Assembly: GCF_011386835.1 (NCBI RefSeq)
Contig: NC_088794.1
Span: forward strand, 3,720,001-3,784,000
DNA from: Chrysemys picta bellii
Lineage: Eukaryota
DNA: 64,000 bases
Reading direction: 5' to 3'
This document shows positions 19,489 through 53,054 of the stretch, piece after piece. Made by a program: the position numbers and the translations under genes. The notes below the pieces were generated by a model. The model was not told the DNA's origin. It was given only the letters and a program-made list of their open reading frames with translations, and ran no database searches. Position 1 is the first letter of the stretch; the number at the start of each line of letters is the position of its first letter.

Positions 19489-19875
19489 TCACAGGATCAT
19501 GGGGACAGCTGCAGCTAGGAGAAGCATGACAGGCAGAGCTGGCACTAGGCATAAGCAGACTAGGCAATAACTTAGGGCCCCGAGCAGCCCAAGGGGGCCC
19601 CCTATCCACTTTGCCTGGTTTAGTGTTGTGTGGGTGGGGGAGGCCCCCAAAATATTCCTTAGGCTAGCACCAGCACTGTTGGGCTGCATGACAGACATGC
19701 CAGGCACAGTGACGGGTATGGTGCGGAGATAGCCCTGGATCCAGTCGGCGTAGGGGGGCAGCAGGATGTAGACCCCTGGGCGGTTGGGGCTCGCGCATTC
19801 CACGCCCCAGCTCACCACCCCGGCCAAGAGCCACGCGTTGTCCCATTCGCAGACCAAGGGTCCCCCAGAGTCACC
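19489..19875 (-). CDS. Copy 1 last exon (Ser195 and hydrophobic tail)
   Basis: GDSGGPLVC...[15 protein letters not shown]...[11 protein letters not shown]; 387 nt. Confidence 0.95.
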
Positions 19876-22800
19876 CTGCAGACAGCAGAACCATGGAGTC
19901 AATTCCTGGTATGTCCTCTAGGGGGCGCTGGCTCTGATCCAGCCCCAGTGCCAGGGACTGGCTGGTTCAAAGAGATGGGAAATGGGACATGGGGCCTTTC
20001 CCCACTAGGGGGCACCGGCTCTGATCCGGCCCCAGGGCACTGGCCCCAGGGCAGTGGCCAGCTCAGGGGGGCAGGGAATGGGACATGGGACCTTTCCCCT
20101 CTAGGGGGCATCAGCTCCAGCCCCAGGCGGGGAACTGACTGGCTCAGGGTGGGTGGGGAATGGGACATGGAGCCTGTTCCCTTCTGGGGGGCACCGGCTC
20201 CACTCTGGGATTGACTGGCGTATGGGGGGAGGGAGTCAGAGAATAGGATACAGGGTCTCACCTGACACGCATCTTTCCCCCCTTCTGGATACCCTGCGCA
20301 GATCATATCCTGCTTGATGGGATCAATCCCCTGAGGGTCGTCTGGGTATGAGCTGGTGTTGAAGAGGCTGTTGCAGGTGTCTCTGTCTATCAGGGGAACC
20401 TGCACCTCTTGCAGCGTTTGGGGGGCTTCCAGGCTCTCTGAGGACAGACAGACGCACAGAGCTGAGTCACCCCCATGGAAACAAGCCATTCCACAGCTGC
20501 AGAGATCAATCGATGGAGTATTGCTGGACAGCTCATCCCAGCCACTGTTGGGACTCCAGCACCAGCACCGCTCCATGCTGACCAGCAGAGGGAGCCCTTG
20601 ACCCTCACACTTGCACAGGTTGACACTCCACGGGACACAAGCTGTGGGTCAGCCGAACTCCCCACCTTCCCACAGAGCTGTCATCGGGGCGGCTCTATGT
20701 ATTTTGCCGCCCCAAACACAGTGGTCATGCAACCTTCGGTGGCATGCCTGCAGGAGGTCCGCCGGTCCCGTGGCTTCAGCGTACCTGCCACCGAATTACC
20801 GCCGAAGCTGCGGGACCAGCGGACCTCCCGCAGGCATGCCGCCGAAGGCTGCCTGACTCTGCCGCCCTCATGGCAACTTGCCACCCAATGCACGTGCTTG
20901 GGGCGCTGGTGCCTGGAACCGCCCCTGGCTATCATGGAATGGAAAAGGTCTCTCCCTGCCTCAGTTTCCACATCTGTAATATGGGGATAACGATCCCGAC
21001 CTCCTTTGTAAAGCGCTTGGAGATCTACGGGATGGAAAGAAGTAGGTACGAGCCAGCGATTTGTTATTACTACAGGATCAAAGCCACCACCTCAGTTGCT
21101 CCCATCTCCCCATCAGCAGAGGGACCCGCTTTGGGCATCAAACCGCAGGACACTGGCATCACTAAAGATCCATCCGCAGAGCCCTGGCACCAGCAAAACC
21201 CCGCACCACAGCAGTATGCGCAAAGCTGCCACAGACTCTCACCCAATACAAAAACAGGGACCATAAACTAGGCGTGGAAATTGGAGGGTTCAAAGACAAG
21301 GAAGGATGACAGAGGAAATTCCACCAGCAACTTGCTAGATCAGTGGTTTTCAAACTGCGGGTTGTGACCCAGTACTGGGTCATGGAATGGAAGGCAGTGG
21401 GTCCCGGCGGCTCTCATCAGCACTGCTGACCGGGCCATTTAAAGTCCCGTCGGCGATGCTGCCCGGCTAAGCCAGGCTTTGTCACTACCTGTTCTGACAC
21501 CGCGCTGCGTCCCGGAAGCAGCCAGCAGCAGGTCCGGCTCCAGGTGCGGGGGCCGCGGGGCTCCGTGTGGTGCCCCCACCCCGAGCACTGGCACCGTACT
21601 CCCGTTGCCCGGGAACCAGCCAATGGGAGATCGGGGGGTGGTGCCTGCGGGCGAGAGCTGCTTGTGCACCTCCGCCTAGGAGCCAGACCTGCTGCTGGCC
21701 ACTTCCGGGGCACAGAGCGGTAAGCAATGCCAGGACAGGCAGGAAGCCTGCTTTAGCACCCCCTCTGTGCCGCTGACCGAGAGCCGCCCGAGGTAAACCT
21801 GCACCCCAATCCTGTGCCCCAATCCCCTGCCCCAGCCCTGAGCCCCCCCAAACCCAGAGCCCCCTCCTGCATCCCAAACCCCTCATCCCCAGCCGCACCC
21901 CAGAGCCTGCACCCCCAGCCCAGAGACCTAACCCCCTCCCGCACCCCAACCCCCTGGCCCAGCCCAAAGCCTCATCCTACACCCTGAACCCCTCAATCCT
22001 GGACCCATCCCGCTGCCATCACCCCCATACCCCAACCTTCTGCCCCAGCCCTCAGCCCCTCCCACACCCCAAACCCCTCATTCCCAGCTCCGTTGGGTCT
22101 TGGGCATCAACAATTTTCTTCAACTGGGTCGCCAGAAAAAAAGTTTGAAAACCAAACTGCGCTAGACCGCCACAGCTCCAGGGTACACATGCAGAGCGAC
22201 ATTTGAAAGCAAAAGCAGCCGTTCTCCAAAGGCAGAATCCATGGGGGTAATATCCAAGAGGTAGAAATACGGGAGGCGTATGCCAGCAGCACACTAGATG
22301 GCTACAAATCCATGCGTACAACGATCATGCGAACAGCACCACAGCAGGATCTGCCACGATACCGCAGGGACACACTGAATGCATGACAGGGGTAAAGCAG
22401 GGGTGGGAACTGGATGGATGAAGGGAGGGTCCAAAGCCCGAAGAGGAATGAGGGTGGAAATTGGCTAGCAACAGGCTAGCCTGCTATGGATTCATGCACA
22501 GAACAGACACACTAACAGGTTATCTTCCCACAGGAAGATGTACAAAACTTGCATCTGAAGAAGTGAGGTTCTGACCCACGAAAGCTTATGCTCCCAGTAC
22601 TTCTGTTAGTCTCAAAGGTGCCACAGGACCCTCTGTTGCTTTTTTAAAACTAAAACAATCTCTCACCCAGTGCAAGATGAGGGACTTTAAAGGTTAGGGT
22701 TAAGGTTAGGGTTGGGGGTAGAGTATAGGTTATCTTTAGGTATAGGATGAGCATAACTGTTAACTTGAAGGTCAAGGGTGAGGGTTATTGGTGGGGTACA

Positions 22801-52500: not shown

Positions 52501-53054
52501 TGGTTCACCTGGCAATGAGATGCAGCCGTCTCTGGGACGTGGCAGTTGGGGAACAGCCGCACAGTGACGGCTCCCGCCTGGGTTACTCACCCATTGAAGC
52601 AATGAGCTGCTGACACCACCCAGCTCTCGGCAATGAGGGACCCTCCGCAGATATGGTTGCTGCCTTCACGGATGCTGACCTGCCAGGGCCAGGACCCATT
52701 CTTGGCATCATTGCCCCCCACAATGCGGGGAGATCCCATTGGCTGCTCACAAGCTGAGGAGAAAGGTGGGGAGCAGAGTGAATAGAACCCAGGAGTCCTG
52801 GCTCCCAGCCACCGCTGCTCTAACCCATTAGATGTCACTCCCCTCCCACACCCAGGGCTAAATCCCAAGAGTCCTGGCTCCTGGTTGCCTGGCACATAAC
52901 CTCTATCCTGTCTTCCCTCCCCATCCTCTGTCTCCCCACCCATGAGGTCTCAATTCCAAGGGCTGTTTCCCAGGTGCCCAGCCAACCACTCACCTTCCAG
53001 CAAGGGCAGCTCCTGCAGCAGCCGAAAGACTAGCAGACAGCTTAGACCTCTCAT
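46120..53054 (-). CDS. Serine protease S1A copy 2 (prostasin/PRSS27/tryptase-like, hydrophobic C-terminal anchor), 354 aa
   Basis: Exons 52994-53054, 52591-52753, 51899-52164, 46895-47070, 46120-46518; total 1065 nt, open frame; intact His/Asp/Ser triad and Asp189. Confidence 0.88.
46895..47070 (-). CDS. Copy 2 penultimate exon
   Basis: [17 protein letters not shown]...EGEKDACQ; 176 nt. Confidence 0.95.
47721..49074. mobile_element. hAT element (paralog of 21341-22159) with internal minisatellite expansion
   Basis: TIR CAGTAGTTTTCAAAC / GTTTGAAAACCCCTG; TSD-like CGCTAGAT / CATTAGAC. Confidence 0.85.
48168..48860 (+). repeat. 140-bp C-rich tandem repeat (4 near-identical units plus a diverged fifth)
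   Basis: Unit starts at 48168, 48308, 48448, 48588 and 48729; only one unit in the paralog (about 21820-21960). Confidence 0.9.
49465..49505 (+). ncRNA. Minimal hammerhead ribozyme motif (paralog of 22551-22591)
   Basis: GCAT-CTGAAGA-AGTGAG-GTTCTTA-CCCAC-GAAA-GCTT-ATGC. Confidence 0.7.
49597..51780 (+). repeat. Degenerate (TTAGGG)n-like arrays in copy 2 intron
   Basis: Colinear with 22680-24810. Confidence 0.85.
50398..50772. mobile_element. Penelope-like insertion within the telomere-like array, with a decayed hammerhead motif (50647-50685)
   Basis: Inverted PLE termini; 13-bp TSD CTGTTAACCTGAA; empty site at about 23460. Motif has TTGATGA and CAAAA in place of CTGATGA and CGAAA. Confidence 0.85.
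51899..52164 (-). CDS. Copy 2 Asp102 exon
   Basis: [14 protein letters not shown]...GDIALVEL...CWVTGWGD; 266 nt. Confidence 0.95.
52591..52753 (-). CDS. Copy 2 activation/His57 exon
   Basis: [27 protein letters not shown]...AAHCFN; 163 nt. Confidence 0.95.
52994..53054 (-). CDS. Copy 2 first coding exon ([20 protein letters not shown])
   Basis: ATG, G|gtgagt donor, phase 1; ends in LPLLE like paralog 3 exon 1. Confidence 0.7.

Follow-up and report, generated by a model that had tools for sequence, protein, structure and literature searches.

The 64,000-nucleotide stretch of the painted turtle, Chrysemys picta bellii, that we analysed (NC_088794.1, positions 3,720,001 to 3,784,000; hereafter the window, whose own numbering is used throughout) is eukaryotic DNA with one run of N, at 28431-28568. 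It holds three serine protease bodies: copy 1 (minus strand, 26908-19489), copy 2 (minus strand, 52753-46120) and gene 3 (plus strand, 55092-58038). It also holds four cassettes of a promoter and a P-type signal exon, P1 to P4, the first of which supplies exon 1 of another protease gene, gene 0. Our main focus is on copy 1. Taken together with its first exon (30362-19489, minus strand), copy 1 is, as read from the sequence, a real chimera in which the first exon of one paralog type precedes the catalytic exons of another, and we think it likely that this chimera was made at the junction of a tandem duplication of about 26 kb. The gene is present in current annotation, and the mechanism belongs to a known kind; what is new is the story of its origin, its age, and the points on the donor side that this story leaves open.

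The five GT-AG exons of copy 1 match XP_065447260.1 ('serine protease 27-like', 365 aa) at 100%, with 30257 joined to 26908 across a first intron of 3.3 kb. Copy 2 is XP_023956586.2, likewise with five GT-AG exons and an identity of 100%. Both proteins match the Trypsin domain (PF00089) at 243 and 242 bits, respectively, against a cut-off of 20.6. The motifs SAAHC, GDIAL and GDSGG and the activation site PR|IVGG can be read in both copies, in exons 2, 3 and 5, and of the 239 residues of the catalytic domain 22 differ between them. The top solved-structure matches are prostasin chains (E = 2e-85). Like the membrane-anchored S1 proteases prostasin (PRSS8), PRSS27 (marapsin) and testisin, the turtle enzymes have a Trypsin domain, the His/Asp/Ser triad, an R|IVGG site with a propeptide cysteine, and a hydrophobic C-terminal tail, which is present in the hybrid. 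Unlike these three, they belong to a turtle-specific expansion with several paralog types, and the likeness is one of sequence. In the literature, we found no publication on this turtle gene family.

An older RefSeq model, XP_023956586.1 (633 aa, 'transmembrane protease serine 9-like'), merged copy 2 and copy 1 into one protein with two domains, and the current annotation separates them. We considered a third gene copy and rejected it: the variants found in Ensembl and old RefSeq models (PMESPR, GWGDTQNG, VCKW, ECARP) are those of copy 1 in the older assembly.

The first exons of copy 1 and copy 2 are both phase 1 and encode signal peptide only, with a shared Ala codon split G|CT, so that splicing 30257 to 26908 yields an in-frame preproenzyme. 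Because these exons carry nothing but signal peptide, exchanging one for the other alters the promoter, the 5' untranslated region (UTR) and the signal peptide without changing the mature enzyme. The mature part of the hybrid, ACEQP...R|IVGG and onward, comes wholly from the LPLLE-type parent, whose surviving representative is copy 2. An earlier note on this DNA had placed an LPLLE-type first exon near copy 2; it is present at 53063-52994, 240 bases upstream of the IVGG exon. The same note had copy 1 meeting a block whose signal exon (30257-30314) is a paralog of gene 0 exon 1, and these blocks (29956-31114 and 3502-4634) are indeed 85.8% identical, with the signal exon intact in both.

The further idea, that the catalytic domain came under the promoter, signal peptide and mini-exon of the other paralog, holds in part. 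Gene models of four species do give the hybrid a first exon of another type, but the mini-exon is skipped everywhere (omitted from the hybrid models in 4 of 4 species). Its relic reads GAPVSQNRA where the native form is GAQGSWNQT, and the dinucleotide ahead of the 27-nt homolog is GT, not AG, the native acceptor having been lost. Within it, an 18-nt candidate (29808-29791) is flanked by usable AG and GT signals and would leave the frame intact. P3 would presumably act as the promoter of copy 1, and the unrelated sequences upstream of copy 1 and copy 2 suggest that the two may be expressed differently.

Self-BLAST recovers a single long colinear direct duplication in the window, with units A and B (Table 1) colinear over 23 kb and offset by 25.8-27.9 kb. 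Most blocks are 86-94% identical, and divergence is alike along the units (P1/P3 86-95%, P2/P4 90%, gene bodies 88-94%). The final block common to both, 27015-27174 and 52784-52943, is 90.6% identical and ends 266 and 190 bases upstream of the IVGG exons of copy 1 and copy 2, respectively. Past these ends, we found only short matches, at most about 120 nt long, to a dispersed SINE-like (short interspersed element) repeat, and a few chance words of 10-17 nt. This agrees with the earlier note, in which the copies were close in catalytic exons and introns and their homology stopped at 27174 and 52943; on re-reading of the sequence, all of its coordinates proved correct.

On its right, unit B ends inside intron 1, 51 nt downstream of the LPLLE exon's donor. 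In the direction of the genes, the elements are LPLLE exon 1, copy 2 catalytic exons, intergenic Y', P4, spacer X' and P3 exon 1, then the junction, and after it copy 1 catalytic exons, Y, P2, X, P1 exon 1 and gene 0, which continues off the window. Copy 1 spans the duplication junction, with exon 1 in unit B and exons 2-5 in unit A. Its chimeric intron 1 has several sources: 27174-26909 matches intron 1 of copy 2, 30256-29956 matches P1, and 29955-27175 matches the left part of P2, not the flank of P1. Within the last of these, 27255-29955 is colinear with 9467-10819 at 75-88%, and additional repeats occupy 27858-28175 and 28653-29606.

We propose that the ancestral locus, in gene sense, would have consisted of an LPLLE promoter and exon 1, the catalytic exons, an intergenic stretch with a decayed cassette, a P-type promoter and signal exon, and the body of gene 0. 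The tandem duplication would then have taken in everything from intron 1 of the LPLLE gene, just below its exon 1, to intron 1 of gene 0. The upstream copy 2 would retain the LPLLE exon, the downstream P1 exon would stay beside gene 0, and the junction would set the duplicated P-type promoter and signal exon, P3, before the second set of catalytic exons. In this way P1 and P3, as well as copy 1 and copy 2, could have become pairs in a single event. P3 would reproduce faithfully what was once a complete P1 cassette, and P1 would later have lost, or been separated from, the part that matches 27175-29955. The earlier note had attributed the duplication to an unequal crossover; no homology common to both breakpoints was found that would show one.

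Table 1. Positions of the duplicated units, signal cassettes, protease exons and a recurrent repeat in the window
Feature	Position	Strand	Description
Unit A	3502-27174		P1 cassette, spacer X, dead P2 cassette, intergenic Y, copy 1 catalytic exons
Unit B	29956-52943		P3 cassette right part, X', dead P4 cassette, Y', copy 2 catalytic exons
P1 signal exon (gene 0 exon 1)	3803-3908	-	MDPAGFGQDRTRRGWI-MGHVCSLLAMALLTMSLVQ, intact, GTGAGT donor; gene 0 body outside the window
P2 signal-exon relic	11115-11165 (approximate)	-	7-nt deletion giving ATG..TCC TAG
P4 signal-exon relic	39000-39046 (approximate)	-	the 7-nt deletion of P2 and a 12-nt deletion on the donor side
P3-left, most of chimeric intron 1	27175-29955	-	includes the N gap 28431-28568 and an orphan of ~80 nt, 27175-27254
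Copy 1 coding exon 1	30257-30362	-	P-type signal exon, XP_065447260.1 residues 1-35, second ATG at 30314, phase 1, GTGAGT donor
P-type mini-exon relic	29791-29817	-	18-nt version of the earlier note 29808-29791
Copy 1 exon 2	26746-26908	-	propeptide, IVGG activation site, catalytic His (SAAHC); ...ctcctcag precedes 26908
Copy 1 exon 3	26137-26402	-	catalytic Asp (GDIAL)
Copy 1 exon 4	20262-20437	-	
Copy 1 exon 5	19489-19875	-	GDSGG serine, hydrophobic C-terminal tail, stop codon 19491-19489
Copy 2 coding exon 1	52994-53063	-	ancestral LPLLE-type signal exon, GTGAGT donor after 52994
Copy 2 exon 2 (IVGG)	52591-52753	-	intron 1 only 240 nt
Copy 2 exon 3	51899-52164	-	
Copy 2 exon 4	46895-47070	-	
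Copy 2 exon 5	46120-46518	-	stop codon included
Gene 3 signal exon	53927-53992	+	LPLLE-type
~76-bp SINE-like unit	26939-27112, 52782-52881, 55040-55118, 10531-10606, 29653-29730, others		

The same hybrid is found in other turtles. The cases came to light among protein cluster members: Malaclemys XP_053881033.1, Mauremys mutica XP_044871511.1 and Pangshura KAM9148898.1 show a near-identical signal peptide and then |ACEQP, and each of these turtles also has the LPLLE copy. A search for the same N-terminus with residues 1-40 of XP_065447260.1 returned only that protein itself. The hybrid signal peptides differ by 0-2 residues between species, by 4 from P1, and by more from native P-type signals, the nearest of which belongs to a Platysternon protein (MGHLCSPLAIALLATSLAQ).

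An LPLLE-type N-terminus on this catalytic type occurs in Emys, Trachemys, Malaclemys, Mauremys, Pangshura, Chelonoidis, Chelydra, Caretta and the side-necked Emydura, and in a short form in Pelusios. Among the proteins found, snapping, sea and side-necked turtles have the LPLLE form only. Since the LPLLE end is the one that precedes this catalytic body in outgroup turtles, it is ancestral, and the possibility raised by the earlier note, that both 5' ends were ancestrally attached to these catalytic exons, is not borne out by the outgroup proteins found, all of them LPLLE-ended. The opposite polarity, with the P-type end ancestral and the LPLLE exon a later gain of copy 2, was rejected on the same ground. 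The native P-type signal (MG.LCSPLALALLAMTLLQ) precedes the mini-exon GAQGSWNQ.G and then a different body (CGQPRISGRIVGGGDAPRGRWPWQ...). This signal and the GAQGSWNQ mini-exon are native to IVGGGDAPRGRWPWQ-type proteases of both cryptodires and pleurodires, including Emydura and Carettochelys. With the P-type signal native to IVGGGDAPRGRWPWQ bodies and the LPLLE end ancestral to the catalytic body of copy 1, the hybrid joins two paralog groups.

The near-identity of the hybrid signal peptides argues for one origin, before Emydidae and Geoemydidae split, and the hybrid thus probably arose once and predates that split. It is not a recent event of the painted turtle but ancient and common to more than one turtle family. 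The 6-14% nucleotide divergence between units A and B, uncalibrated as it is, seems compatible with an age before the split in slowly evolving turtles. Between five hybrids and seven LPLLE copies there is a single fixed column, in FNEVIRP, with E in all hybrids and R or S in all LPLLE copies. The hybrids also share a C-terminal tail motif, in variant form in Mauremys; a partial Terrapene protein and one Chelonoidis paralog have the hybrid tail motif, and the Chelonoidis paralog has FNEVIRP as well. The odd N-terminal exons of a Mauremys protein were considered as proof of an old junction and rejected, as they lie within the high-copy repeat 27858-28175.

Several observations weigh against the origin of copy 1 in one tandem duplication. 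Self-comparison of the window finds no partner for 27175-29955 either in the right flank of unit B or left of 3502, and because nothing in 1-3501 matches it, a later deletion, insertion or rearrangement at P1 is needed. Indeed, 1-3501 matches nothing in the window, the homology of P1 to P2, P3 and P4 ending at about 3500, and no match was found in the window for the orphan of about 80 nt at 27175-27254. On the left, homology between the P2 and P3 cassettes ends at 27255, only about 80 nt from the junction, a near-coincidence that is unexplained, and the body of gene 0 lies off the window. Contigs and reads of the runs compared with the window contain no splice joint 30257|26908. In run X1 (151 million letters, presumed, like X2 to X4, to be RNA), which covers most of the stretch and for which the read comparison filters conserved stretches, depth is zero at exons 1 and 2 of copy 1. 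Transcript support for the hybrid consists of database gene models, from RefSeq and a submitter, in four species. Finally, a catalytic-domain tree leaves the hybrids ungrouped: enforced grouping of the hybrids is borderline rejected in the approximately unbiased (AU) test (p-AU 0.043), and the emydid and geoemydid hybrids are each nearer to LPLLE copies than to one another.

This lack of grouping is probably due to faster change in the hybrid catalytic domain together with gene conversion with the parent. Counted from Chelydra, the hybrids show 19-34 changes and the LPLLE copies 16-22. Copy 1 of the older assembly has copy-2-like residues (GWGDTQNG, VCKW, ECARP), which is consistent with conversion. 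In addition, at the end of copy 1 exon 3 (26137-26150), contigs of two other runs, X15 and X17, differ from the window at 26139, 26143 and 26146, and those of X1 at 26143 and 26146, so that other individuals have other letters here. These variants and the residues of the older assembly point to polymorphic gene-conversion tracts between the copies.

A history in two events, in which the body was duplicated, its LPLLE exon was lost and a P-type cassette was then copied in front, would leave the wider similarity of P1..P2 to P3..P4 to further duplication or gene conversion. It draws on the fact that P3 is a complete cassette, colinear with P2 over 27255-31483, whereas P1 is cut at 3502, on the cassette boundary just 80 nt from the junction, on the multiplication of cassettes in the cluster (P1-P4), and on the heterogeneity of A/B identity (86-98%). 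We nevertheless regard it as distinctly unlikely: X, P2/P4 and Y are duplicated too, in equal order and orientation and with similar divergence, for which one tandem event suffices, and P3 is without flanking target-site or transposon features. It seems still less probable, and by our estimate quite improbable, that the join is an annotation artefact, with copy 1 a decaying duplicate or a read-through of copy 2 and P3 an orphan attached to it as the phases happen to fit. Over what is estimated to be tens of millions of years, copy 1 has preserved its reading frame, its splice sites and its catalytic triad, and the P3 signal exon is intact and nearly invariant in four species, while its sisters in P2 and P4 have decayed. 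An artefact would be in keeping with the fusion of copy 2 and copy 1 in XP_023956586.1, with the assorted implausible N-termini of Ensembl copy 1 models, and with the contigs compared with the window, which show no splice junction; yet three separate RefSeq annotation runs and one submitter annotation agree on the join. Read-through also fits ill with run X1, in which depth over intron 1 stops at exon 1. Over exon 3, one contig of this run has a depth of 110 and a stretch near the 3' end of the exon 151; the listed intron 1 contigs have 3-13, and there is none upstream of exon 1 (30402-30700), where DNA runs do cover. This pattern fits a primary transcript beginning at exon 1, although it is suggestive only.

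It can hardly be credited, finally, that copy 1 is the product of an assembly error, with the gap or the repeats in 27175-29955 concealing a misjoin. The N gap, the high-copy repeats at 27858-28175 and 29289-29606 and the fact that no listed contig crosses the gap would leave room for such an error. Against it, the gap flanks (28386-28430 and 28585-28663) are colinear with P2 (10307-10352 and 10412-10491), in equal order and orientation, and with P4. The right flank belongs to a minisatellite of which P4 contains a 40-bp array (38220-38374), and a variable repeat at the gap is sufficient reason for it; as the gap falls within intron 1, the reading frame is unaffected. Contigs of three other runs bridge 27174 (X1 27041-27312, X15 27020-27206, X17 27063-27206) and contigs of two bridge 29956 (X15 29713-29994, X17 29804-30079), and the chromosome-scale Malaclemys and Mauremys assemblies give the same exon 1-exon 2 model. 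Nothing in the sequence suggests a misjoin at the gap. The misassembly that the earlier note had considered at the junction or gap is thus countered at both ends of P3-left by independent contigs, and within the gap by the colinearity of its flanks with P2 and not by a spanning contig. Run X1 also has a contig of 312 letters whose match begins exactly at 29956 (29956-30114), its first 153 letters lying elsewhere; it most likely derives from the 97% identical P1 copy, whose homology likewise begins there.

Of the four cassettes, P3 is the only intact one upstream of copy 1. In P2 and P4 a 7-nt deletion introduces a TAG and leaves both dead as coding exons, so that the cassettes do not form an alternative-first-exon set. 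We looked for relics of catalytic exons near P1, P2 and P4 by tblastn with 215 relatives and rejected that idea too, finding none in 1-3500, 4600-10400 or 31100-38100. A relic of the LPLLE exon in copy 1 was sought at 27175-27254, where only a resemblance of about 15 nt (GCCCTGCTGGAGG) stands at the right distance and nothing else aligns; we took this for chance and rejected the relic.

On the far side of copy 2, gene 3 is an older paralog arranged head-to-head with it. Because its signal exon is LPLLE-type, this type is native to this side of the cluster. Between the two genes (52994-53992), about 860 bp separate the start codons, and the LPLLE-type signal exons are homologous to one another; copy 2 and gene 3 may share a divergent promoter region. 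The region was lost from copy 1.

Units A and B differ in several further respects. An intergenic stretch of about 4 kb downstream of both copies, 13376-17326 in unit A and 40357-43669 in unit B, is 97-98% identical by self-BLAST, compared with 86-94% elsewhere, which suggests recent gene conversion or constraint. Several Ensembl models put alternative C-terminal exons in this stretch (e.g., 16512-16625 and 16669-16785). In copy 1 intron 3, 24829-25541 is a LINE-like (long interspersed element) fragment, which we take to be CR1, with an open reading frame (ORF, 24944-25699) of 251 aa resembling reverse transcriptase; an inverted copy, 94% identical, lies between P1 and P2 at 8444-9160. Both are absent from unit B and were therefore inserted after the duplication. 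Unit B alone has an insertion at 42142-42603 that is 94% identical to the terminal repeats of a Gypsy-like element (59906-60368 and 63446-63909) and is probably a solo long terminal repeat (LTR). A 140-bp unit is single in copy 1 intron 3 (21798-21961) and forms a tandem array of about six units in copy 2 intron 3 (48166-48993). The SINE-like unit of about 76 bp (...GGAGCCAGGACTCCTGGGTTC...) lies immediately upstream of all three IVGG exons and also within the P cassettes. It is tandemly duplicated (2.3 units) in copy 1 alone, and it is often translated in database models as false N-terminal coding sequence.

Variable first exons are a familiar layout, as in the protocadherin clusters and UGT1A. 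Similar to these, the turtle locus has promoter and signal-exon cassettes repeated upstream of a protease body, four of them in the window. Unlike these arrays, it has a single intact cassette, P3, before copy 1, the next one upstream, P4, having a premature stop, and it fuses two gene types where the arrays offer alternative first exons of one gene.

The closer parallel is with chimeras made by tandem duplication. In Drosophila yakuba, tandem duplications give rise to novel expression patterns through exon shuffling and chimeric genes (PMC5460883). The turtle locus resembles this class in being a direct duplication with breakpoints in introns of two same-strand genes, both parents probably remaining whole, and in having at its junction a third gene that combines the 5' end of the downstream parent with the 3' part of the upstream parent. 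The turtle hybrid differs in belonging to a vertebrate and in being fixed and common to turtle families, not a segregating variant. It differs as well in that its parents are paralogs of one family, with only the promoter, 5' UTR and signal peptide swapped, and in that the matching intron sequence expected at the donor gene is missing.

The practical value of this finding is modest, and nothing suggests an unusual biochemical function for the hybrid enzyme. Copy 1 offers a vertebrate case in which one can read how a tandem duplication that breaks inside introns can give a third, hybrid gene while both parents are kept. The occurrence of the hybrid in two turtle families or more makes it possible to bracket its age, and its expression and rate of change can be compared with those of a parent that survives 26 kb away. 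It is tempting to speculate, although we find it doubtful, that the promoter and signal cassette is a portable module, repeatedly duplicated and able to capture the catalytic body of another paralog, and that the resulting hybrid has been kept for tens of millions of years with a domain changing about 1.4-1.7 times faster than that of its parent. If this were true, the locus would represent a dated case of vertebrate regulatory neofunctionalisation by an exon-1 swap, with gene conversion with the parent still continuing.

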